From: Trichosphaerium sp. ATCC 40318 | Lineage: Eukaryota; Protista; Tubulinea | Assembly: GCA_038496445.1 (NCBI GenBank) | Contig: JALMLS010000208.1 | Coordinates: 124,001-188,000 of the forward strand | DNA length: 64,000 bases | Direction: 5' to 3' | Part shown: positions 19,074-63,200 of the stretch, piece by piece | Position numbering within the stretch: position 1 is the stretch's first letter | Layout: each line of letters starts with the position of its first letter | The notes under the pieces: generated by a model | What the model was told of the DNA's origin: nothing | What the model saw: only the letters and a program-made list of their open reading frames with translations | The model's database searches: none | Program-made: the position numbers and the translations under genes

Positions 19074-20327
19074 ATGTCACTTCTACAACTTCCATATGAA
19101 CTTCAACAATATCTATGTACTTTCAACAAGGAAACATTTCATAAGTTCCACGTGTTATCAAAAACGGCTGCTATTAACACACATTACAATGCTAGTCTGA
19201 ACAAACAAGGTATTTGGATTACTTGGTATCCATGTGGTCGTGTTCTAAATAAAACAATGATGGTTGATGGTAAAAAACAGGGAGCGATGAAACTGTGGTA
19301 TTTGAACGGACAGCTATGGTTCCATGCATGGTACAATAATGATAAACAGCATGGTAAGTACAAAAGTTGGTACACAGGAGGAAACCCTTATGTAGACGTT
19401 GTGTATGTAAAAGGACTAAAGGAAGGCATGCTAAAGCAGTGGTATGAGAACGGACAACTTAAATATCAAACAATGTATGTTAATGACAAGAAGAATGGTG
19501 AGAAAAAAATATGGAATGAGAACGGACAACTTGTGTCGCAAAAAACCTGGATTAATGACGAGAAGACTGGTGAGATAAAGACATGGCATAAAAACGGACA
19601 GCTTGCAGTACAAAAAATCTATATTGATGGGGAAGAGACTGGAGAACATAAACAGTGGTATGAGAATGGACAAATTCAGTTAAAAACAACCTATATTGAT
19701 GGAAAGGAGAATGGTGAATACTTTTGGTGGTATGCGAATGGTACAATGAAGGATCAAGCTATATACATAAAAGGTGAGAAGAATGGTGAATGCAAACTGT
19801 GGTATGATAATGGGCAACTTGAGGTGCAACGAAACTATACTAATGGCAAGAAGACTGGTGAGGAAAAGATGTGGTATGAAAATGGACAACTCCATATACA
19901 AGCAATGTATATCGAAGCAAAGAGAAATGGTGAATACAATTCATGGTATGAGGATGGTATAGTCAAGTGCCAAGCTATGTACGTTCAAGGTAAGAAGCAT
20001 GGTGAAGAAAAGATATGGTATGAAAATGGACAACTCCATATACAAGCAATGTATATCGAAGGAAAGAGAAATGGTGAATACAATTCATGGTATGAGGATG
20101 GTATACTCAAGTGCCAGGCTATGTACGTTCAAGGTAAGAAGCATGGTGAGGTAAAGAGATGGTATGAAAATGGACAAATTCACAGACAAACAATGTATAT
20201 TAAAGGAAAGAGATATGGTGAATGCAGTGTATGGCATGAGAATGGACATCTTAAGCTAAATAGAATATATGTTGATGGTAAGAGATGTGAACATCCATTA
20301 ACAACTGTGAGACGTAATTCCTTGTAA
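19074..20327 (+). CDS. Intronless F-box-like + MORN-variant (MORN_2/YwqK-type) repeat protein
   Basis: N-terminal LLQLPYELQQYLC followed by about 15 24-aa repeats GExKxWYENGQLxxxxxYxxGKK. Confidence 0.88.
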   Translation: MSLLQLPYELQQYLCTFNKETFHKFHVLSKTAAINTHYNASLNKQGIWITWYPCGRVLNKTMMVDGKKQGAMKLWYLNGQLWFHAWYNNDKQHGKYKSWYTGGNPYVDVVYVKGLKEGMLKQWYENGQLKYQTMYVNDKKNGEKKIWNENGQLVSQKTWINDEKTGEIKTWHKNGQLAVQKIYIDGEETGEHKQWYENGQIQLKTTYIDGKENGEYFWWYANGTMKDQAIYIKGEKNGECKLWYDNGQLEVQRNYTNGKKTGEEKMWYENGQLHIQAMYIEAKRNGEYNSWYEDGIVKCQAMYVQGKKHGEEKIWYENGQLHIQAMYIEGKRNGEYNSWYEDGILKCQAMYVQGKKHGEVKRWYENGQIHRQTMYIKGKRYGECSVWHENGHLKLNRIYVDGKRCEHPLTTVRRNSL

Positions 20328-33618: not shown

Positions 33619-36092
33619 ATGGGTATAGCACATCAAAAGTTTGTATGTGATGATGGTAGTGTGTATGTTGGCGAATTTCAAGACGACACATTCCATGGTA
33701 AAGGAGAGATGACGTACGCAAATGGAGATGTATATTGTGGCCAATTTAAAGACGGAGAACGTCATGGTTTTGGAGAGCTTACATACGCTAATGGTATAGT
33801 TTGTTGGCAAGTTTATAGATAACAATCGTACAGATAAAGGAGAGTACACATGGCCTAATGGAGATAGATATGTCGGAGAATTTAAGTACAATAAATGTAA
33901 TAGCAAAGGGGAGTTTATGTATGCGAATGGACATAAGTATAAGGGAGAATTTATAAATAACAGACGTACTGGTAAAGGAGAATATAAATGGGAGAATGGA
34001 GAAAAATATGTAGGTGAATTTAAGGACAATAAGTTCAGTGGTCATGGAGAGTTTACATATCAAGATGGAGGAAAACATATTGGTGAATATAAAGATAATG
34101 AACGCAACGGATATGGAGAGGTGTTGTATGCGAATGGAAATAAGTACGCAGGTCAATTTAGATATGATAAACGAAATGGATTAGGTGAGTTGAAGTGGAA
34201 GAATGGGAATAAATATATCGGTTGTTTTAAAAATGATGAGCGTACCGGTAAAGGAAAGCTTATCTGGGGAAGTGGTAATAAATATATCGGTGATTTTAAA
34301 GAAGGTAAACGTAGTGGCAAAGGAGTGTTTGTGTTCGTAAATGGAGACAAGTATGTCGGAGAATTTGAAGATGACAAACGTGATGGTAAAGGAGAATGTA
34401 AATGGGTTGATGGAAGAAAATATAGTGGTGAATTTAAAGATAACAGACGCACTGGTAAAGGAGAATATACTTTGGCAAACGGAGATAAATATGTCGGTGA
34501 ATTTAGAGACAATGAATTCAATGGCAAAGGAAAGTTTACATGCAAAGATGGAATGAAGTATGTTGGTGAATTTGAGAATGATAAATTTATCAAAGGAGAG
34601 ATTATATACAGAAATGGAGATAAGTGTATTGGGCAGTTTAAAGATAACAAATGTAATGGAACAGGAGAGTTTATTTGGGCAGATGGGAAAAGATATATTG
34701 GCGAATTTAAAGACAATAAGTTCAATGGTAAAGGAAAGCTCATTTATAGAGATGGAAGTAAATATACTGGTGAATATAAAGATGATAAACGTAATGGATA
34801 TGGAGAGTTTTTATATTCAAATGGAACAAGATACAAAGGTCAGTTTAAAGACAACAAGTTTAATGGTTCTGGGTGTATGTGGTTAATTGATGGCACCACA
34901 TTGAGCGGTACATGGTTAAAAGGAGGTATAGTTGGAACCGGTACAATGGCTTTTCTTGAATCTAAGGATATTGAAGCAACATACTTGATACAAGGAACAA
35001 AGTTGGTTACTTTTCTCAATGAATATGAAGTAACAGATAATCCCTTTACACTCTCATGTGTCCTCCACAAAGAATCTATCCAACCGTTGTCCTGGACTTA
35101 TAAGCAAGTGTTGTTTGTACTATTCAAGATAGATCCAAAGCTTGCTCTTATGTTAAGAGAACAACGGTTAAGGTACGTTTTTTAGGCAAGAATGTACTCA
35201 CTTTTTGCATAGTGGTAGAGATTTCTTGGAGTTAGACAAAACTGCACTTGTATCAATGATAAATGTACCTTTAGAATATGCAAACAAACTTCTAGACTAC
35301 ACAGCGAACTTGAAAAAAGGTACAACAGAAAACAAATACGTGTCTGACATAACAGTAGTCCTCCCTTCAACATACAATGAGCCGAAAACAAAATCAGTAA
35401 CAAATAGTCATATGTCTTTAAAAAATATGCGTTCAAAGTTGAAAGCAGACCCAAAAGATAATTTATTGTCAAAAGCATGTGTTGATCTTGATTATGAGTA
35501 TACCAAGTTTGGATCTGAGCCTGAACATTTAGATATTATTCAAAACGCCATTGAATACATTCAAATACAACAAGAAGATCAAGTATGGTTCTGAATTTTT
35601 TACAGTTTAAACTGCTGACAGAGTACCCAATTTTAGGCGAATGAAACACGTGATAATATTAATACTTCAGCCGGCACTGTTACTTCTCGTGATGCTTCAT
35701 ATTCATCTGATAGCATGGATGACTTTATTTCCAAGAATTCTTGGACTGATAAATCCAATGTTTCTGTTGTAACCAAGGTACAGATTGCACTGTTGGTTAT
35801 GAGTCTATTAACCCTTGTTTAGCCAAGCGTCTCTCATGATTATGATACTCAATCAGTGACTCCTTTAACTACAAGTGAAGAGGTACTAAACAATTGGAAG
35901 TTGCTACTAGTAAGCTTGGGAATTGGAAACCAACGAGCTAGTGAACTTGGACCATTAATGAATGACGCAGGAGTAGAACTACATGAAATTAATCAAAGGT
36001 TACTAAAAGAACTTGGATTTAATGCTAGCGAGCGTGTCAAAGTTTTAAGAGCTAGGAACAAAGACAGAAAGAATAAGGGAAGCAATAAATAA
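33619..36092 (+). CDS. MORN-repeat protein with C-terminal SAM-like domains; frameshift near 33797
   Basis: About 19 YxGEFKDxKxxGKGxxxxxNGxK repeats. Spliced C-terminus WTYKQVL...EQRLSGRDFLELDK..L and ELHEINQRLLKELGFNASERVKVL are SAM-like. Confidence 0.75.
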
Positions 36093-37918
36093 ACAGTACT
36101 TATCAATGTCTTTTTTACAAAAGGGTGACAATCTTCTTTACCAGCCGTTTCCCAAACTTGTTTCTCATTGTGAGCTCACCTCTAATGAACCCTTACGGAT
36201 TCTGTTGCTAGGTTTAATCCTGATGATATCTGCATAAAAATTTCAGTTTGTCTTGTTAAGAGCGATCGACATTGTTGTTGCGGTTTGATAAATTTGCTCA
36301 AAAAACTACTTTCGTGGATGAATTCAATATTGAGGTAGAATTGACTTCTACTTTGGAAGGTGTAAGGATTTACAAGACTATTAACGTTCATATCTCTGAA
36401 AATTTTGACTAGAAGGGAACGAAACAGTCCAAAGTCGGTATTATATTCTATTTTTATGGAAAATTATAAATACTGAGGTAGTGCACCTTTTCACAGTTCG
36501 GTTTACTTTTGATATTACCACGTGATTTGGTAAAATTCCAAGCAAAGCTAGCGTAGCGCTGGTACTTTGATACACGAGGATAAACTAGAGAGTATTGTTC
36601 TTTGTCCGTAAGTTACGTTCAGGTTCGAGCATTCTTACAAGTTTTAAATAACGAGTGTATCCCAATGACATCCAAGGATGTTAGGTTTAGGTTCAAGAAG
36701 TATTATTTATTAGCAGCGAATATCAACGATGATATACCACTGCCTTGGGCGGTGTTCAACGACAGTATTGATTATTGGGTATTCGATCCTGATTATAGTA
36801 ACGACTACACGCCTTTGTAACGGACAGTTGTAACGTTGATGTAGTTCTAATTTATTAATATTTACAAGTTAAGTAGAATAGATAACTGGGAGCGCCTCCC
36901 AATATAATGAGAGCGCGTTCGCAGTTGGTCACGAGATCTCTCATATCCTTGCTAATGGCACTCTAGTGCTGAAAGCAAGGCTGGCGCCATCCACTCCAAT
37001 CCGTACAAGAACCAGATCAGTATGGCTTGGGTGGAGTAGTGCCAAAAGTTCACAATTGTAAAAATGTAAAAGTCACCGCTAGTTGCTGTTGGTCTACCAA
37101 TGCATTTTGAGGTTTTATTTAATAAACCAGCTTACCTCAAAAAAACAAAACTTGTTTGTGAGTGAAGATGTGAACATTTCAGGCGTTTGAACCAGCATGG
37201 TTGTAACTCAGACAAACTCAAAATTTGTTTTTCAAAAAAAAAAAAAAATTATTTGACATCGTGTTGTAAATAAATCCACACGCTCGCTCTGCGCTCGAGC
37301 TATCTGTCAGGGACAGATGTGTTCCTTTCCTCCAGAAGATCGTCTCGCTGTCATAGGTTGGTTGATTGAGGATGTGGTCTAAGACAATTTGAGAAGTGTT
37401 AGCAACTTTGCAATTGTCAACCAACCGCAGTTTCTATATGTATAGTCACGTGTTTTGTAATACAAAAAGTACATGTTTCTCTTAGTTCACATGACAATTT
37501 TCGTCGTCAATGCATTTCATAGATGCGCGAGTTAATGCCAGACGGGTTTATTTGACAAATACTGCGAGGAGAAGAACTTACACAATTGTATCCACTAGTT
37601 ACAGCGGGCAAAGTGTAAACCCAAATCATGGTCCTTTCCTGTTTCGCTGTAATGGACAAACGAAGCTTAAAATTGACGGAAAATATAGAGATAAAGCCAG
37701 TACGCGCCACCGTGTCACAGCTCAAAGTTTGTTCACCATTTTAAACAACAGTTGCCCACAGTGGGATTAAAAAAGGCAATCGCGTTGAAATACCCATTAA
37801 ACTACATGTTAATCGCTGTTACGCGGAGATTGAATTACGTTCACGAATACACGTGACACAAAAGCATTTACCCATTTTGAAACACGCTTCAAAATACTTA
37901 ACATTCATTGTAGTAAGC

Positions 37919-40900
37919 ATGTCATCCACATTTTACTACAGTGTGGTCGTTACTCTTGCTCTATTTGTTTCGACATCACTTTGTGCCTCAAGCGCTAAGC
38001 CTTCTACCATTTTCTCTTGTAACGTAACATCTACGGAGTGGGGTTGCCCTCCGGCCGATTGGCTAAATAAGACTGTTAATTTGAACGGTGTAGCAACGAT
38101 GGTACCAAACCGCTTTAAATGTACGACGAACCCCGAACCACGTATGAGTTGGGCAACAAAAGCTATTCGAACTGATAATTACATGGTCTTTGCTGGCGAG
38201 GAAGATGATCCACAGACAGAGTATATACCTGGGAGTATCGTCGAAGTGACTATTTTAACCATAAAGTACAGATCAAAGTACAGAGGCTTGATGATGTACG
38301 TGCACGTGTTTGGTCTTGTTGTGTAAAATAGATATAAAATTTTTTGGGTTGATAGCTAATATGGTTTTGTCAGGTACGCTGAGGATGAGAATAACAATCA
38401 CGTGGGTGAATGGAAGCTAGCAACTGATTTTCCACGTAAGTAAAAGAGTTGCAGCTAGCCTTTTTGTACACATCCCTTATGTTACGTTTAGCTCTTTTCA
38501 AATTGCCATGGGGTTCCAACCACACTTGCGGTCATACAGTGATGCATGCGAGCGCTCAACTTAAACCTCTGAGATCAACAATTATATTTATTGCTCCACC
38601 AAAGGGTACTGGAACAATCACGTTCAGGGCGCTCATAAAGAGTGGCGATGCCAACACTGGAGACTTTTGGTGGCCTAATCTCAGTGGTGACTTCACAATG
38701 ACTGAATCAAGCGAGTCTCTTCCAACAAATACAGGATGGTTTCAATCGGAGGTAAAGCTACAATACCATCTCTTAACCCTTTTGATTCTTATTTTTTTCT
38801 TCAAGGTTGGCCAATCTTGTACTGAACGATGTGCAATGGAAAACCTTCAATGTGACTTGGTATCACTAGAGCATATCAATAGTATTGATAGGATCAACGA
38901 TGAACTGACAACATCAGGATTTCTTTGTAAGAAACCATTCCTCAGTGGATGTAGCGCTCTTGGTACAACACAAAGTACAGATGGGTTTTGCTACTATGAC
39001 GATACAAGATGTGAAACTCAAGGACGTGATGAAGATAGAGTAACTTGTGATGCAAAGACCACAAACACTGAAAACGGGTACACTTCATTTCACTTCGCTC
39101 TCTTTGTGTTGTTTTTAACTGGTTTTCAAGAATGCGTTTCTGTAGATGCTTAGAGACTACCCAAGCACCTGTCATACCAGATAATACCACCGTGCCTTCA
39201 AATGGCGGCGCTGAACCTAGTGACTTATCTCCATCATCAAGACCAGTTATTTCTATTTTGATGCTTGCCTTGTGCACTGTTGGTGTTGCTTTCTTCACAT
39301 CAAACAAGGGTCACACTTCAACACCATTTATCCTCGGACTATTACTCATCGCACTGGTCGCTTTACCTTCTACTCATGGACACAACTGGATTGAAAGTAT
39401 CAGTCGATCACCACATGCAAGCACTGAAACGCCATGTCCTCCCCCTGTTCAATATGGTCCTCATGTTCAAGTTGGTCCTAACCAGTATTTCGAAGTAGAG
39501 TATGTCCAAGGTCATGAAGACTTTTCGTATTTCGCTATTGTTCATTCGAAAAACGAAGACAAGTTGAAGCTACATACGGAAGAGATGTTTCAAAAATACT
39601 TTGATGAAGCACCTACCATCCAAACACTTAGAGTTGTACACAGACGCTACAAAGCACGTGATCCACAACCTGAAGATTCTTACTTTGGACCTGAGATTGC
39701 GATGAATGACCCTGACTTTTTACCTCGTCCAGAAGCTTTTGGAGACTGGGGAGATGATGCAAAGTTGTTTTCATACAAACCAGAGTATCACCAAGATAAT
39801 TACGCCGAATACGAAAACCCAGATATGCCTTGGATTGAAGCTGTTTTCAGAGGAGAACACTTGGTTAAGAGGGGTCTTGATTCTGATGTCGTCAAGTTTA
39901 AGATACCTGGCCGTTCTGGTACAGGAAGGTATATTCTTCATTGGTACTGGAAAGGATATCGTGATTGTACAGATGTTGATTACGTTGATCATCAAGTACA
40001 GAATATTTACGGAATTGTCGAAAATGCGACTTCTTACACGTGCGTTTATCGAGCTTTTATTTAGTCAAGTTTTTTCTTTGTTTTGGCCTTTAATATTTAT
40101 TTTCTTATAATACAATTAGGCGTATCGATCACTGCTACTTCCCAGACCATAGAGCTACACAAAGTACGTTATTTTTATTATTTTTGTACTATGGTTTTGT
40201 TTTTAATGTTGGCTTGTTAGGTTGCTCTCTAATCTACAATGACATCTCTTATTGTGCTTTAAAGTGCGGACCTAAGTGCACAGGCGTCGCAGTTATGCCT
40301 CTATCTGTTGCATCAAGATACAAAGGAGAAGCGTCACTCGTACCAGATGAGTGTTTTGAACGCTTTGAGAACTCCAGTACTATTGAGAACCCAGAGGACA
40401 CTTATGTTTGCTTCATCGTATATGCCCGTATTCCTTCTGACACCTTTGGCGAAACGGAAATAGCGTTTGAAGATGATCCTGCCTACCATTCCACGTGTTA
40501 TATGAGGAGCAGCGGTCTCACATTTCCGGGATTTGTACCGCCAACAGAAAAGGAAATACCTTGGAGACACGGAGATAAATGTATCGACTGCAACACACGA
40601 GAACTCAATAAGGATTTATCATTGATGACCATTCCAAAGTGGCCACTGTCAGAGGATTGTATCAACTGCGACCTTGAACCTGTAGTTGTCGACAAGCCAA
40701 AGGTTCCTACTCTGGTCAACAAAGAGGCTGGGATGGGTTGCAACGGAGTAAGAAAAATATGGCCAGATAACCAACATCATTCGTGTAATGGCACTGCTAA
40801 TGAAGTTTCTACCCTTTGTCAAAAACAGCTAAGATTTGATGGAAGAAACGAAAAAATTGGCTTTTTCTTTCCTTCGGAGTGTGCTATGGCCGCAAGCTTA

Positions 40901-41068
40901 GACCCTGATTGTTCAGATAAGATTACAATGTATGATGGTAGTTCTGTTTATGGTGGTATTCATGCAGGGCAGTGCTTTTGTCAGACAAAGTTTGAATGCT
41001 GTAACGGATGTGTTAAGGTTGCTTTCGATGATACTAAGTATGTTTATTATGATCTCGTTATGGCTTAG
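37919..41068 (+). CDS. Putative polyprotein: signal peptide - Reeler - Cys-rich domain - TM - internal signal peptide - LPMO-like His-brace domain - Cys-rich C-terminus
   Basis: Reeler EYIPGS..YRGLMMYAED..VGEW..CGHTVMH..IAPPKGTGTITFRA. Cys module GQSCTERC...RFCRC. Two hydrophobic segments, then THG|HNW...QGH...YILHWYWKGYRDCTDV. Six in-frame GT-AG introns. Confidence 0.78.
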
Positions 41069-46327: not shown

Positions 46328-47577
46328 TCAAAATTCATACCATCTAAAAATATCCAAGGCATGTAAAGCCTCAGTATTCTTTTGAACACAATCAAGATAC
46401 ATACACCAGCTGTCATATTTTGTGCCTCTTAAATCAATCTCATGTACACCCGCCAATGCCTTTAAACCTTCATCTGTAATTTGATAACAACAACTGAGAT
46501 TGATGGCATGAACACCTGAAAGCCATTTCAAACCTTTGTCTGTAATACCATCACAATGACTAAGATCAATACTATGAACACCTGAAAGTGATTTTAGACC
46601 TTCATCTGTAATATAATAACAATGACTAAGATTGATAGTATGAACACGTGAAAGTGATTTCATACCCTCGTCTGTAATGCAACGGCAACGACTGATATTG
46701 ATGGCATGAACATCTGAAAGCCAGCGCAAACCTTTGTCTGTAATACGCTTACAATAACTAATATCAATAGTATGAACATGTGAAAGTGACTTTAGACCTT
46801 CATCTGTAATTTGATAACAACAACTGAGATTGATGGCATGAACACCACAAAGCCATTTCAAACCTTCATCTGTAACACCAGAACTACTAAGATCAATGGT
46901 GTGAACATCTGAAAGCAATTTTAGACCTTCATCTGTAACACGATAACACCCACTAAGATTGATAGTATGGACACCTGCTAGCCATTTAATACTGTCATCA
47001 CAAACACCTTTACAACCACTGAGATTAATAGCGTGGACACCAGAAAGCCATTTTAAGCCTTTGGTTGTAATAAGCCTACAATTCCATAGATTGATAGTAT
47101 GAACGCCTGAAAGCCATTTTAAACCTTCATCTGTAATATAAAAACAATGACTAATATCAATAGTATGAACACCTGCTAGCCATTTAATACTGTCATCACA
47201 AACACCTTTACAACCACTGAGGTTGATAGTATGAACACCAGCAAATTGTTTTGCATTACTAACACTAAAATCAAAGAGGAGAGTGATTTTTGTGTGGCGT
47301 AGAGCACTATTATGTTTTAAAAGCGCTTTTACTTCATCATCAGATTTAATACTGACACGTTCATATCCAATAACATCGTGGACAATAGAAGCAAAGAGAT
47401 GGCATGTTTGACAAGCTGCAAATCGGGCTTTGGTCGTTTGACGTAAAATATGAGCTAAAATCTCTGTTGGGAAGTCTAGAATGTGTATTGGTGTGCTTGT
47501 GGAATGTTAAACGTTAAACAGAGCGATATTGGTACAGCATACCTTTGATAATCGGTATCCGGAAGATGTATTGACAT
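46328..47577 (-). CDS. F-box + cysteine-containing LRR protein (one 5' intron)
   Basis: MSIHLPDTDYQ/STPIHILDFPTEILAHIL F-box, then about 12 LSGVHTINLSxCxxITDEGLKW repeats. The frame is open upstream of the 46918 ORF call. Confidence 0.87.
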
Positions 47578-49934: not shown

Positions 49935-51500
49935 ATGACATCCAAACGTCGGGTACTACCCTTTTTACCCTATTCTTAGTTTACTCTAACTGTCACTTGT
50001 TTTTTTCAGGTTAACCTTTCGGATTTTGATAATAACAATCTATTACGCCTTCCCCTTGAGCTACAGCTTGATATTATTGATTTAGATTTTGACATTTACT
50101 TAAAGTGGCCTCTATTATCTAAAACGTCGGCTACTACAACGAGGTTTGATAGCGAGTTAAAAAAGCAAGGAAAATGGTTTAAGAAAAAGAAAGACTTTCA
50201 CGTGCTACAAGCTCAACAAATTCAGAAGTACAAAGAGTGGTCTATGTATGGCCCTCTATTGGTTCATTGTTATTACCTCAATGGTAAACTTGATGGAGAG
50301 ATTAAACGTTGGTATTCAAGCGGTCAACTGAAGGTTCATTGCAAATATGTAAACGGCAACCTTGATGGGGAATACAAGAGTTGGTATGAAAATGGATATT
50401 TAAAGAAGTGGTACGATAGTGGTCAATTAGAAGCAGAACGTCATTATGCCAATGGTACACTTGATGGAGAAAGTAAACATTGGTATCAGAATGGTCAAAT
50501 GAAGGTTCATCGCTATTACGTAAATGGGGAACTTGATGGGGAATACAAGAGCTGGCATGATAATGGTCAATTAAAAGAGAAGTGTGAATACGTTAATGGC
50601 AGACAAAACAATAAATATATGAGTTGGTATGTGAACGGTCAGTTGAAGATGCAACATTATTTCATCAATTGTTTAAGTCAAGGAGAGCATAAGAGTTGGT
50701 ATGAAACAGGTCAATTGGAAGTTCTGAGTTTTTTCTTAAACGGTAAGCAAGTTGGAGAACACAAAGAGTGGTATATACATGGTCAGATAAAAACAAAAAG
50801 TACTTGCCTTAATGGTAGTCTCCATGGAGAATTAACAAAATGGCATGGAGACGGTAGATTGAGAGAGCAGTGCACATACAAAAAAGGTGAACAAAATGGA
50901 TATTTAAAGAAGTGGTACAATAATGGTCAGTTAGAAGCAGAGTATCACTATACTAATGGTACACTTGATGGAGAAAGTAAACAGTGGTATTCAAGCGGTC
51001 AACTGAAGGTTCATTGCTACTATGTAAATGGCAAGCTTCAAGGGGAATGTAAAAGGTGGTATGACAATAGTCAATTGCAAGAGATGAGTGAATACGTCAA
51101 TGGTAAACAAAGTGGTGAATACATGAGTTGGTATGCCAATGGTCAAATGGAAAAGATGGTTCATCATAACAATGGCGAATTTAAAGCATGGCATACCAAC
51201 GGTCAACTAAAAACGCAATACCATTATGTCAACAGAATACGTCAGGGCGGTCACAAGAGTTGGTATTTGAATGGTGTGTTGAGGACACAGTATCATTTTG
51301 TCAATAACAAAATAGAAGGAGAGTACAAGAGTTGGTATAATAATGGCCAGTTGGATATTCATTGTACGTATGTCAATGGTAAACGAGATGGGGAGTATAA
51401 GCATTGGTACAAAAATGGACAATTTGGAGAGCATCGTCACTATGTCAATGGTAAAATAGAAGAATACAAAAGTTGGCCTCATAACCCTTTTTATGTGTGA
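49935..51500 (+). CDS. F-box-like + MORN_2 repeat protein (one 5' intron)
   Basis: MTSKRR/VNLSDFDNNNLLRLPLELQLDII, in frame with the 50202-51500 repeat ORF (GEYKSWYxNGQL). Paralog of the 19074 gene. Confidence 0.85.
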
Positions 51501-60200: not shown

Positions 60201-63200
60201 GGATGGACATTGATGGATCTATCACGGGTAAGAAAAGACCAAGTTGGATTGTATCAGATAGAAACGCACCTCTTTTAACCGATGATTGTGAAAAAAGAAC
60301 TGATTGGAATGCTTGGGTTTGCCCAGCATTTAGGTAATGTTAAAACATCATATGTGGTATTCGCTAAAACGTGCTTAAATAGAGAGGGTTACGCTCAATT
60401 ATCAGTTTATGGTAGAGGTATGCCAAATGATCCTGAATGGAGGGTTAATAGAAGATGGACACGTTCTGAATGGTATCGTACTGATAAGCCTGATTCAATA
60501 TATAAAGGTCAAGGATGGGATGTTAACGGGAACTGGTAATTGATTTTCATTATATTTTTTTTGAGTTTATAAGAAGAAACAGTTTTGTTAACAATTCTGT
60601 ATTTTGCTTCAAGGCTTTGTTTCTCAGGATTCTGAGGCTTAGGGTTTTATTATTTTGATTCAATACTCAATCATACTCTTAAAAATTGTCATTACACTTG
60701 GCGGTTGTTTGACTGACAACGTTTTTTTTTGTTGTTTATGAGAAAAAAGTAGTATTTGGTTTCAGTACTATCTGCTTTTGATCGTCATCAAATTTATACG
60801 AAGTTATCTCTGACAGTTATTAATCTATAGGCAAGATATGAATAATATCATACCTAGAAATATATGGGCACTAAGATGGACTAAGAGCGAATTTGATTTA
60901 GAAAACAACTCACCAAATGAAGTCCGAGTATTCCTTCATTCTGCTATGCCAGGTGATTGGGTTATCATTGCATTACCTTATCCATCTTCCTCTTCATTTG
61001 AGATTATCCAGAAGAAGTATGACTCTGATCCAAACCCAGAAACATTCACAGAAGTCAACTCATTCTCAGACTTGAACCGATTCACTTACTATTATGACTC
61101 GCAATCACAACATCTATACTTTCTCATATATAACTGGAGACATGGGTATAACGTTCATTACGATCTATTGGATTATGAGAGTTATGGTGATACTGTCACT
61201 ATAACAGCGACTTGCCCTGGAGGTGTGTGCTCCGCACCAAATACAGTAGCAAGAAATTTCGATGTTAGATCATGGACTAGCACAGATTTCTATAAGGCGG
61301 ACTTACAAGCTTGCCAAGTTACTGATACACCACCTGTGACACTTGAAGGTGTTGCCTTCTTTGAGTTGGATATTGATTTAAAGACATTGAACTATCAAAT
61401 TCATCACAAGTGCGTCATGTTGGAAGATGTCTTTGTGTTAATTCTTCTTTTTTTCTAGTTTGGCCGAAGAAGCAACAAAAGTATTCTTCAGTGTTGGCGA
61501 AGTTGGTGAATCTGGATCTATTATTAATACAGTAACGTTACCTTCACCTCCAACTTCACCTGTTGCTAGCACATTTATTTTAAGTCACGACATGTGGAGT
61601 ACGTTCTTTGTAATTTGTTATCTAACTCAGTTAAATCATTAACGTTTTAAATTGTATTGTAACTGTCTAACCTTGAACCTAGCCTATCTTGCATCTGGTA
61701 AAGTCTACTTAACAGTAGCAACCGCACAATATCCTACTGGTGCTATTCGCGGACAAATAGGCTGTGACGAAGATACTTGCAGGTAAAACTAAATACTTTG
61801 TATTTTTGGGTTTTTTTTTCTTATTTATTTTACTCTAGTGCGCCAACACCTAAACCTGATATCTCAAAACCTTGTGAAGATTCTACTTCAGTAGTTCAAA
61901 ACATATTTACGGATGCAGCAGAGTACGTTAAACCACTAGTAAACTCTGACTTCGTGAGAAGGCTAACTTTTTTTTTCAATAGCGAAGCTTTTTATGACAA
62001 AGTAAGTTGTTGGAATTGTCCTGCCGAGGCTATTTCAAATATAACAGGATCAGGATTATGTGGTAATACATTATATCAAATTCTTTTTTTAAATCTAAAT
62101 TTATCTAAGGACAATACGGTGTAAAGGCAACAGGAGAGTCTCGTTGGGATAGAATAATTTTCTTGCCAAAATGGTCTGGAAGCGAATTCAAAAACACTAT
62201 GTTTATTGATGCTGCTACTCACAAGTATATTGAAGCTTTTGTAAAGCTTGGTGAAGGCCAAGGTCCTATTGATAATTTTTACAGTACGTTTAAAAAGAAT
62301 ATCATAAGGAGCAGCGCGTTTGGTTAAAGGCAGCAAAAAACGGCTATGTTGTTTTTACAGAAGTGTCTTATTTTTTTTTGGTTTTATTGTTTTATTCATT
62401 GAGTGCACCCTGTCAATACTTTTGGTATTAAACAACCATGTTGGAGTTCCTTATATTATAAGAACCGATATGTATCACATTCACTAGTGAGAGAACGCAC
62501 TAAACGCTTGAAACCACCAAGATTGTTTATGTTTGATTTAAAAGCATACTAACTTTTTTGCAGTCAACGTCAAAACAGAGGCACTTGGTGAACTCTTTTT
62601 GGATATTAAGGAACATCCTGAGTATGTAGAGAATTTTGTAATAGATGACACGAGATGGACACGTGTTCGTGTACCTTTAAAGGACTTTGAAGGATGGCCT
62701 TCTTCAGGACAAGTTCAGTTCCATTTCTTGGGTCTTTCAGTTCACCCGTTAAATACCAAAGTGACAACGTGGTACATTGATAATGTTCGATTCCTTGATG
62801 GAAGTAAGTACACGTTTTTATGATTATTATACTAATAAAATTTAACATAGCTGCTACTGATACTATGTTGACGTATGAACCTGGTTTACCTTATGATCCA
62901 AGTATTTGCGGAGGTACCCACTTGTTGGTTTTTTTTCAGAAAAAAATAAGAAAAACCTTGGAAGGCTTTTAAGAAGGAGATATCTTCCTACTCTGATACC
63001 TCTGATACTTTAGTACTTTTGGTCAAAGCTGTATAGCTTATGAATACTTAATATTATATTTGTGATTCGAAACACGTGCAAAGGTTGTTGACTTGTTGTA
63101 GTCGAAGCTCCTGTTCCTGTTCAAGATGTTGCTATTGAACCAATTCTGGAGTGTATTGAGCGATCAAATAATGAATATATTGCTCATATTGGTTATGATT

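Follow-up and report, generated by a model that had tools for sequence, protein, structure and literature searches.

Lytic polysaccharide monooxygenase (LPMO) domains are described as lying "always at the N-terminus" (PMC10154629), and copper needs the free amino group of their first histidine, His1 (PMC10154629, PMC10952591). How, then, could a domain of this type work if its first histidine stood in the middle of a longer protein? The question is raised by a gene at positions 37919-41068 of the forward (+) strand in a 64,000-nucleotide stretch of Trichosphaerium sp. ATCC 40318 (contig JALMLS010000208.1), the whole of which is called the window here. In a single frame, this gene encodes a Reeler-like N-terminal part, a hydrophobic hairpin and an LPMO-like domain whose candidate His1, residue 408 of the protein, comes directly after the hairpin. 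The evidence presented below makes it probable that the product is a single secretory precursor, which would be cut before His408 into a membrane-held Reeler protein and a soluble copper protein.

Gene structure and open frame

The gene model, derived from the sequence, has seven exons (37919-38295, 38374-38435, 38492-38751, 38806-39077, 39131-40039, 40120-40163 and 40221-41068) and encodes a eukaryotic protein of 923 aa, with the ATG at 37919 and the stop codon at 41066-41068. All of its features lie on the (+) strand. The six introns are in frame, have GT..AG borders and measure 53-80 nt. RNA evidence was taken from the spliced contigs of the public run X1, which are low-depth contig sets. 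Five of the six introns are spliced in these contigs exactly as modelled (38295/38374, 38435/38492, 38751/38806, 40039/40120 and 40163/40221), and the 5' end of one contig is found at 37906, 13 nt before the ATG. Between 37906 and 41043 the RNA contigs depart from the window by 13 listed differences, all of them substitutions; judged by this mismatch of ~1%, the RNA stems from a different strain, or a different allele, of this organism.

Intron 4 (39078-39130) is unsupported by any read among the X1 contigs. Splicing at this position is indirectly supported: it restores RFCxC, the conserved motif with which the Cys-rich domain ends in every relative. If the intron were kept, translation would stop at 39151-39153 after a hydrophobic tail, FHFALFVLFLTGF, and the resulting Reeler/Cys-rich protein would be without RFCxC, the hairpin and the LPMO-like part; the tail may simply be T-rich intron sequence. 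Retention as the main end of the upstream protein was rejected, as it would remove a motif conserved in the relatives. The spliced exon 4/5 junction has no exact match in the JGI metagenome contigs, and no second copy of the gene was found within the window.

The deduced protein consists of an N-terminal signal peptide, a Reeler-like domain, a 12-Cys domain, a stalk, helix 1, a loop, helix 2, His408, the LPMO-like domain, a Cys-rich region and a PAN/apple fold, in this order. The original prediction, made from the letters of the window, had proposed a frame that stays open beyond the Cys-rich domain, across the two helices and on into the LPMO-like part, and this frame is present in full: exon 5 (39131-40039) holds RFCxC, the stalk, helices 1 and 2 and the entire LPMO-like domain. 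The two helices, the 10-aa loop, the T-H-G that precedes the His codon at 39381 and the EYVQGH histidine at 39513 were likewise found where it had placed them.

An LPMO-like domain without a Pfam or CAZy model

The LPMO-like domain, of histidine-brace type, occupies 39381-40039 and begins with His1 (CAC, 39381-39383; His408 of the precursor, in HNWIESISR). A query of 227 aa starting at 39381 was searched exhaustively with HMMER over 1.84 billion cluster representatives, and 362 representatives were recovered at E<=1e-3, 179 of them at E<=1e-10. An alignment of 75 relatives was used for both conservation and profile. Invariant in it are His45 (39513-39515), the second His, which lies in EYVQGH, and Tyr73, while conservation of >=90% is seen at His1, Asn2, Trp3, Arg9, Pro18, Trp190, Gly192, Tyr193 (39957-39959, within GRYILHWYWKGYRDCTDV), Asp195 and Asp198.

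The AlphaFold2 model of the 230-aa domain, built with this alignment, is a confident beta-sandwich (pLDDT 91.9, pTM 0.88), in which His45 sits in a hairpin between strands 36-43 and 48-55 and Tyr193 opens the last strand. A Foldseek search of the model against the PDB gave nothing at E<=0.001 and weak LPMO rows only. As Foldseek proved insufficient, the structural list was obtained with VIA-align. It is topped by seven histidine-brace families: LaX325 (score 8.0; 122 aa aligned, root-mean-square deviation 3.2), TdAA15 (7.3; 116 aa, 2.7), AA13 (6.2), AA9 (6.1), AA10 (6.0), AA16 (5.8) and AA11 (5.6). In each of these alignments residue 1 of the model corresponds to residue 1 of the mature protein. 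A shape search of the ESM Atlas gave a TM of 0.52 over 153 residues to a haptophyte cluster with LPMO_10 in 19% of its members, and a language-model search points to the same LPMO_10 lead.

At the sequence level, the window domain matches nothing in Pfam at E<=1, and none of the 75 relatives matches an LPMO family, PF03067 included; the six exon-level pieces of the gene and ten full-length relatives gave nothing significant in Pfam either. Among PDB sequences, phmmer found no match to the domain, and the profile of the 75 relatives found none at E<=10. A word-index search with the family profile for LPMO_10-annotated intermediates returned unannotated family members only. Both the LPMO-type sandwich and the unclassified family foreseen in the original prediction are in agreement with these results: the predicted fold supports the placement of the domain after His408 in an unclassified LPMO-like family, for which neither Pfam nor CAZy holds a model. 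In such a fold His1 and His45 would be expected to bind copper, with Tyr193 nearby.

It is unlikely that the domain, once released by a cut, is instead a beta-sandwich adhesion or lectin module in which HNW serves folding or ligand binding. The residues expected of a brace are the most conserved ones and stand at fitting places, namely the chain start, the early hairpin and the last strand, and the lead of the seven brace families, aligned residue 1 to residue 1, also speaks against such a module. A strict His at +1 of a signal-peptidase site, as found in 129 clusters (see below), would further make little sense if the free amino group were of no importance.

A conserved, predicted internal signal peptide in front of His1

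The position of the His was inspected in the best 150 of the 362 relatives, which are 50%-identity cluster representatives. Alignment starts at query residue 1 in 129 of the 150, and all but one of these begin HNW or HQW/HNY/HNF-type, right after a hydrophobic stretch. In 38 relatives an ordinary N-terminal signal peptide precedes the His, which stands at position 6-45; in 86 the His is internal, at position 100-921. Without exception, the 86 internal relatives carry Ala (70), Gly (10) or Ser (6) at residue -1 and only Ala, Val, Thr, Ser, Cys or Gly at residue -3. The -1/-3 rule holds in 38/38 N-terminal relatives too, with the same residue spectrum, and on the evidence of these alignments the pattern lies far outside what chance would give. 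Before the site lies a hydrophobic core of median length 13, followed by a polar c-region with a median of 5, often with Pro first, as in the N-terminal signal peptides of the paralogues. The signal-peptidase-like site originally suspected before the window His thus recurs across the family, in the -1/-3 residues as well as in the likeness to genuine N-terminal signals. A position weight matrix from 26 N-terminal signal peptides of the family puts the internal sites ~3 standard deviations above background and ranks the window site 5th of 857; the matrix is too crude to pinpoint the site and carries little weight.

A further helix is located upstream in 70 of the 86 internal relatives, separated by a loop with a median of 8 aa and a mean net charge of +1.6. 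The window fits this pattern. A polar stalk with a small-residue cluster, S-N-G-G (39150-39245), leads to helix 1 (VISILMLALCTVGVAFF; 39246-39296), with 17 hydrophobic residues. The 10-aa polar loop TSNKGHTSTP (39297-39326) contains a Lys, the loops of the relatives being likewise short and net positive, and helix 2 (FILGLLLIALVALPSTHG; 39327-39380) is signal-peptide-like, with a 13-residue h-region and the c-region P-S-T-H-G, followed by His. A stop-transfer segment, a cytosolic loop under the positive-inside rule and a re-initiating cleavable signal are all established membrane-protein biology. Read in these terms, helix 1 would be a stop-transfer anchor, the loop would be cytosolic, and helix 2 would be a re-initiating signal with its predicted cut at 39380/39381. 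A minority of relatives have a single helix after a strongly basic segment; in these, the N-terminal part may be cytosolic and the helix a cleaved signal anchor.

That the chain is never cut is very improbable. The protein would then be a two-pass membrane protein with the Reeler and LPMO-like parts both outside, and its His would remain internal and have a non-brace use. Hairpin membrane anchors occur in many proteins, and each of the two helices is long enough for the thin membrane of the endoplasmic reticulum (ER). A membrane-spanning helix 2 is, however, at odds with the small residues at -1 and -3 in 86/86 relatives, with the short h-region and with the polar, often Pro-initiated c-region of about five residues. 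In 38 relatives, moreover, the same domain directly follows an ordinary N-terminal signal peptide and has its His at +1, and the N-terminal and internal forms interleave in the tree, so that helix 2 and N-terminal signal peptides appear interchangeable. Finally, an uncut His cannot give its amino group to copper (PMC10952591), yet His1 is equally conserved in both forms.

The partner domains

The predicted N-terminal signal peptide (~aa 1-24; 37919-37990) is recognisable by a hydrophobic stretch in the first 35 aa (KD9 3.14), followed by C-A-S-S, and a hydrophobic N-terminus is also present at the start of 45 full-length relatives. The Reeler-like domain (~aa 60-233; 38096-38751), interrupted by introns 1 and 2, is supported by homology to the N-termini of the family: the first 235 aa of the protein match those of ~90 members, down to E 1e-49. 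More specifically, aa 76-216 align to the relative P0159 at E 5e-30, and residues 23-120 of P0159 match Pfam Reeler (PF02014) with 28.7 bits, against a cutoff of 21. PF02014 has no direct match on the window exon pieces, the domain being split by two introns, and full-length relatives are mostly without a match too. The Reeler domain named in the original prediction is therefore kept in part: its assignment is supported through P0159, by transitive homology, and not by a direct match.

The Cys-rich domain that follows (aa 234-330; 38806-39149) is interrupted by intron 4, ends in RFCxC and is conserved in 44 relatives; eight of its Cys are invariant and two more nearly invariant across relatives. 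Seven of 30 members show weak matches to the C-terminal end (~85 positions) of the Pfam model Glyco_transf_18 (GnT-V), all of them sub-threshold (E 0.1 for the window and 4.5e-5 for the best relative).

Behind the LPMO-like domain, exon 6 and the start of exon 7 encode a Cys-rich middle region of the C-terminal product (40120-40699, with intron 6 at 40164-40220). This region is kept in the same place in 51 relatives, stand-alone forms included, and has invariant Cys in A2; its AlphaFold2 confidence is moderate and it is without a fold assignment. The C-terminal ~120 aa (40700-41065) are predicted to adopt a PAN/apple fold, and no Pfam PAN model matches this module. Its position behind the LPMO-like domain parallels the layout of LPMOs that carry a carbohydrate-binding module. 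The protein ends ...YYDLVMA and has no hydrophobic segment after His408.

A precursor predicted to be cut before His408

In the processing that we propose, the N-terminal signal peptide would direct the Reeler-like domain and the Cys-rich domain to the lumen of the ER, helix 1 would halt transfer, and the short basic loop would remain cytosolic. Helix 2 would then re-insert with its N-terminus cytosolic and its C-terminus lumenal and act as a cleavable signal peptide, with the signal peptidase complex cutting after T-H-G (39380/39381). One product would be a membrane-held Reeler/Cys-rich protein. The other, soluble and starting at His408, would comprise the LPMO-like beta-sandwich, the Cys-rich region and the lectin-like PAN/apple module. 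Because a copper histidine brace needs the free amino group of His1 as well as its side chain, together with His45 and with Tyr193 nearby, it would form only after the cut. The soluble product may be a secreted or surface copper protein that acts on or binds a glycan, either with LPMO-like oxidative chemistry or as an X325-like copper binder.

The ligands of arthropod Reeler proteins are bacteria and microbial polysaccharides (PMC12113285), and all named carriers of the fused gene are phagotrophs or mixotrophs. A role in prey-wall recognition or attack would be reasonable on these grounds, and copper handling, as for X325, is an alternative.

Several points weigh against this precursor. Its cut before His408 and its binding of copper are predictions, and sequence comparison ties the domain to none of the CAZy or Pfam LPMO families. 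X325, the best structural match, is a copper binder without demonstrated LPMO activity (PMC10952591). At the locus itself, no X1 RNA contig bridges 39060-39382, a segment that includes the hairpin (39246-39380) and in which depth is near zero. One X1 contig stops at 39383, having entered the His codon by two bases, and carries 18 nt of Illumina adapter at this end. An in-frame Met inside helix 1, at 39261, makes a shorter product from an internal start conceivable at this locus. The contig end at 39383 was also considered as a transcript start and was rejected, since the adapter marks a short-insert read-through and no capped end.

Whether the two parts form one chain was also read from the relatives. 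Transcript-sized contigs carry complete fused open reading frames (ORFs), such as one of 933 aa in 3083 nt and one of 980 aa in 2988 nt. Such ORFs also occur in transcriptomes of amoebae, choanoflagellates and others, the named ones being Flabellula baltica (two genes), Cavostelium apophysatum, MMETSP0437, MMETSP0206 (labelled Euplotes focardii), Diaphanoeca grandis and Bicosta minor. An orthologue-like gene of 37% identity on the metagenomic contig L001 encodes the Cys-rich domain, the hairpin and the HNW domain without interruption in a single ORF, flanked by Reeler-like and C-terminal exons. In 45-48 of the 86 internal relatives the loop and helix 2 are entirely free of Met, so no separate signal-peptide-bearing protein can start there. 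The single mRNA for both parts that had originally been claimed is thus backed by the transcriptomes of relatives and by L001, and at the locus, where X1 has no contig over 39060-39382, an independent transcript beginning near 39260 is conceivable.

It is hardly credible that the two parts are separate proteins, made through an internal promoter, an alternative first exon or internal initiation, with the long ORF incidental or a minor isoform: the RNA gap and the contig end at 39383, the ATG in helix 1, the close pair P0012 (internal) and P0013 (N-terminal), which shows both forms among near relatives, and the stop that intron 4 retention would give the upstream protein (ORF 38449-39153) would all suit it, but neither a stop nor a conserved Met separates the domains, about half of the internal relatives are without a Met where such a start would be needed, the fused ORFs are complete in Trinity and MMETSP transcripts, frame and hairpin are conserved at 30-45% identity, the adapter at 39383 is a short-insert artefact, and the mature protein would begin at His408 regardless.

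Comparison with known systems

No sequence similarity is detectable between the window and LaX325 (PDB 6ibh, Bim1-type). X325 is reported to be a fungal family of Agaricomycetes (PMC10952591). The window histidine-brace part, unlike X325, has no C-terminal hydrophobic tail, lies in the middle of its protein and has a PAN/apple module attached. X325 proteins have an ordinary N-terminal signal peptide in front and a glycosylphosphatidylinositol (GPI) anchor of their own. For AA15 and AA10 (LPMO_10, for example TdAA15A, PDB 5msz), the family model PF03067 matches neither the window nor any of the 75 members. AA10 and AA15 LPMOs stand at the N-terminus, whereas the window domain begins at residue 408. 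Their second His also comes later than position 45, where the window domain has its own.

In viral glycoprotein polyproteins, each encoded by one ORF, a transmembrane segment and an internal signal, cut by host signal peptidase, free the next ectodomain (PMC7926653, PMC4974537). The Gn/Gc precursors of bunyaviruses and the envelope precursors of flavi- and pestiviruses have the same topological logic as helix 1, loop and helix 2. In contrast to these, the window family is cellular and extends over several protist supergroups, and its cut would create a metal-binding N-terminus and not just separate two proteins. The arthropod proteins Noduler, PcReeler and LvReeler have a Reeler-type domain in common with the N-terminal part of the window protein; unlike it, they are small, secreted and single-domain, and have no link to copper proteins. 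Full-text literature searches returned no paper joining an LPMO with an internal signal peptide, or an LPMO with Reeler. By analogy, these comparisons support a protein that would work like an LPMO- or X325-type protein, freed as in a viral polyprotein and standing outside the current CAZy and Pfam LPMO families.

Possible origin of the fusion and a GPI-like signature

In a maximum-likelihood tree of 79 domains the N-terminal and internal forms are interleaved, with 10 changes between them, at least 6 of which are forced by well-supported branches. Conversion between the forms is easy to picture, because helix 2 would be a ready-made signal peptide. P0012 and P0013 are separated by branch lengths of ~0.09; the domain is internal in P0012, at residue 438 of 952 aa, and in P0013 it follows an N-terminal signal peptide whose sequence differs. 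A recent fission or fusion event is one likely source of the two architectures, and use of an alternative first exon is another.

The segment before helix 1 has a composition of its own. Small residues peak 5-10 aa upstream of the helix, with a G/A/S frequency of 0.67 at -9 vs ~0.25 in the background, and an omega-like triplet is present 4-12 aa upstream in 60 of 67 relatives, vs 39 of 67 in a control window. The small-residue cluster often follows a Pro/Thr/Ser-rich stalk. The cluster resembles a GPI omega site and its spacer, and together with helix 1 it looks like a GPI-attachment signal, with the difference that helix 1 is not C-terminal in the precursor and would come near a chain end only after cleavage. 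The signature suggests that loss of stop and spacer joined a Reeler gene with a GPI anchor to a gene for a secreted protein downstream of it.

A polyprotein handled by three enzymes is a possible, if rather doubtful, extension of this idea. Helix 1 and the small-residue cluster would then be a former GPI signal that still works, and helix 2 the signal peptide of the former neighbour gene. Once signal peptidase has released the copper protein, and possibly once signal peptide peptidase has removed helix 2, GPI transamidase would transfer the Reeler/Cys-rich half to a lipid anchor. If this were true, one mRNA would give, at 1:1, a GPI-anchored partner that recognises microbes or glycans and a secreted histidine-brace enzyme.

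Other features of the window

Elsewhere in the window, MORN-repeat ORFs (Pfam MORN/MORN_2, E 1e-49 to 1e-74) are found at 19074-20327 (+), 33917-35185 (+) and 50202-51500 (+), and a strong GC skew of 0.27 is seen around 34-36 kb. An LRR_6-rich ORF lies at 46328-46918 (-) (E 4.5e-28), and the ORF at 60838-61458 (+) comes close to the cutoff for CEMIP domain X, with 26.7 of the 27.6 bits required.

Implications for histidine-brace proteins in protists

This gene, together with at least 86 divergent clusters from amoebae, choanoflagellates, rhizarians and other protists, suggests a way round the first-domain rule, in which an internal signal peptide is placed exactly before the His. The clusters belong to a large LPMO-like family that has neither a Pfam nor a CAZy model, and annotation searches limited to N-terminal domains miss histidine-brace proteins of this kind. 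If the proposed processing is true, it would be a rare cellular use of a mode best known from viral polyproteins; LPMO-type domains would be freed from the rule that they must be first, by a design gained or lost at least 6 times among protists. A Reeler-type recognition domain would be paired with a copper protein bearing a lectin-like PAN module, and this pairing may point to the recognition and attack of prey cell walls by phagotrophic protists, or to remodelling of their own surface.

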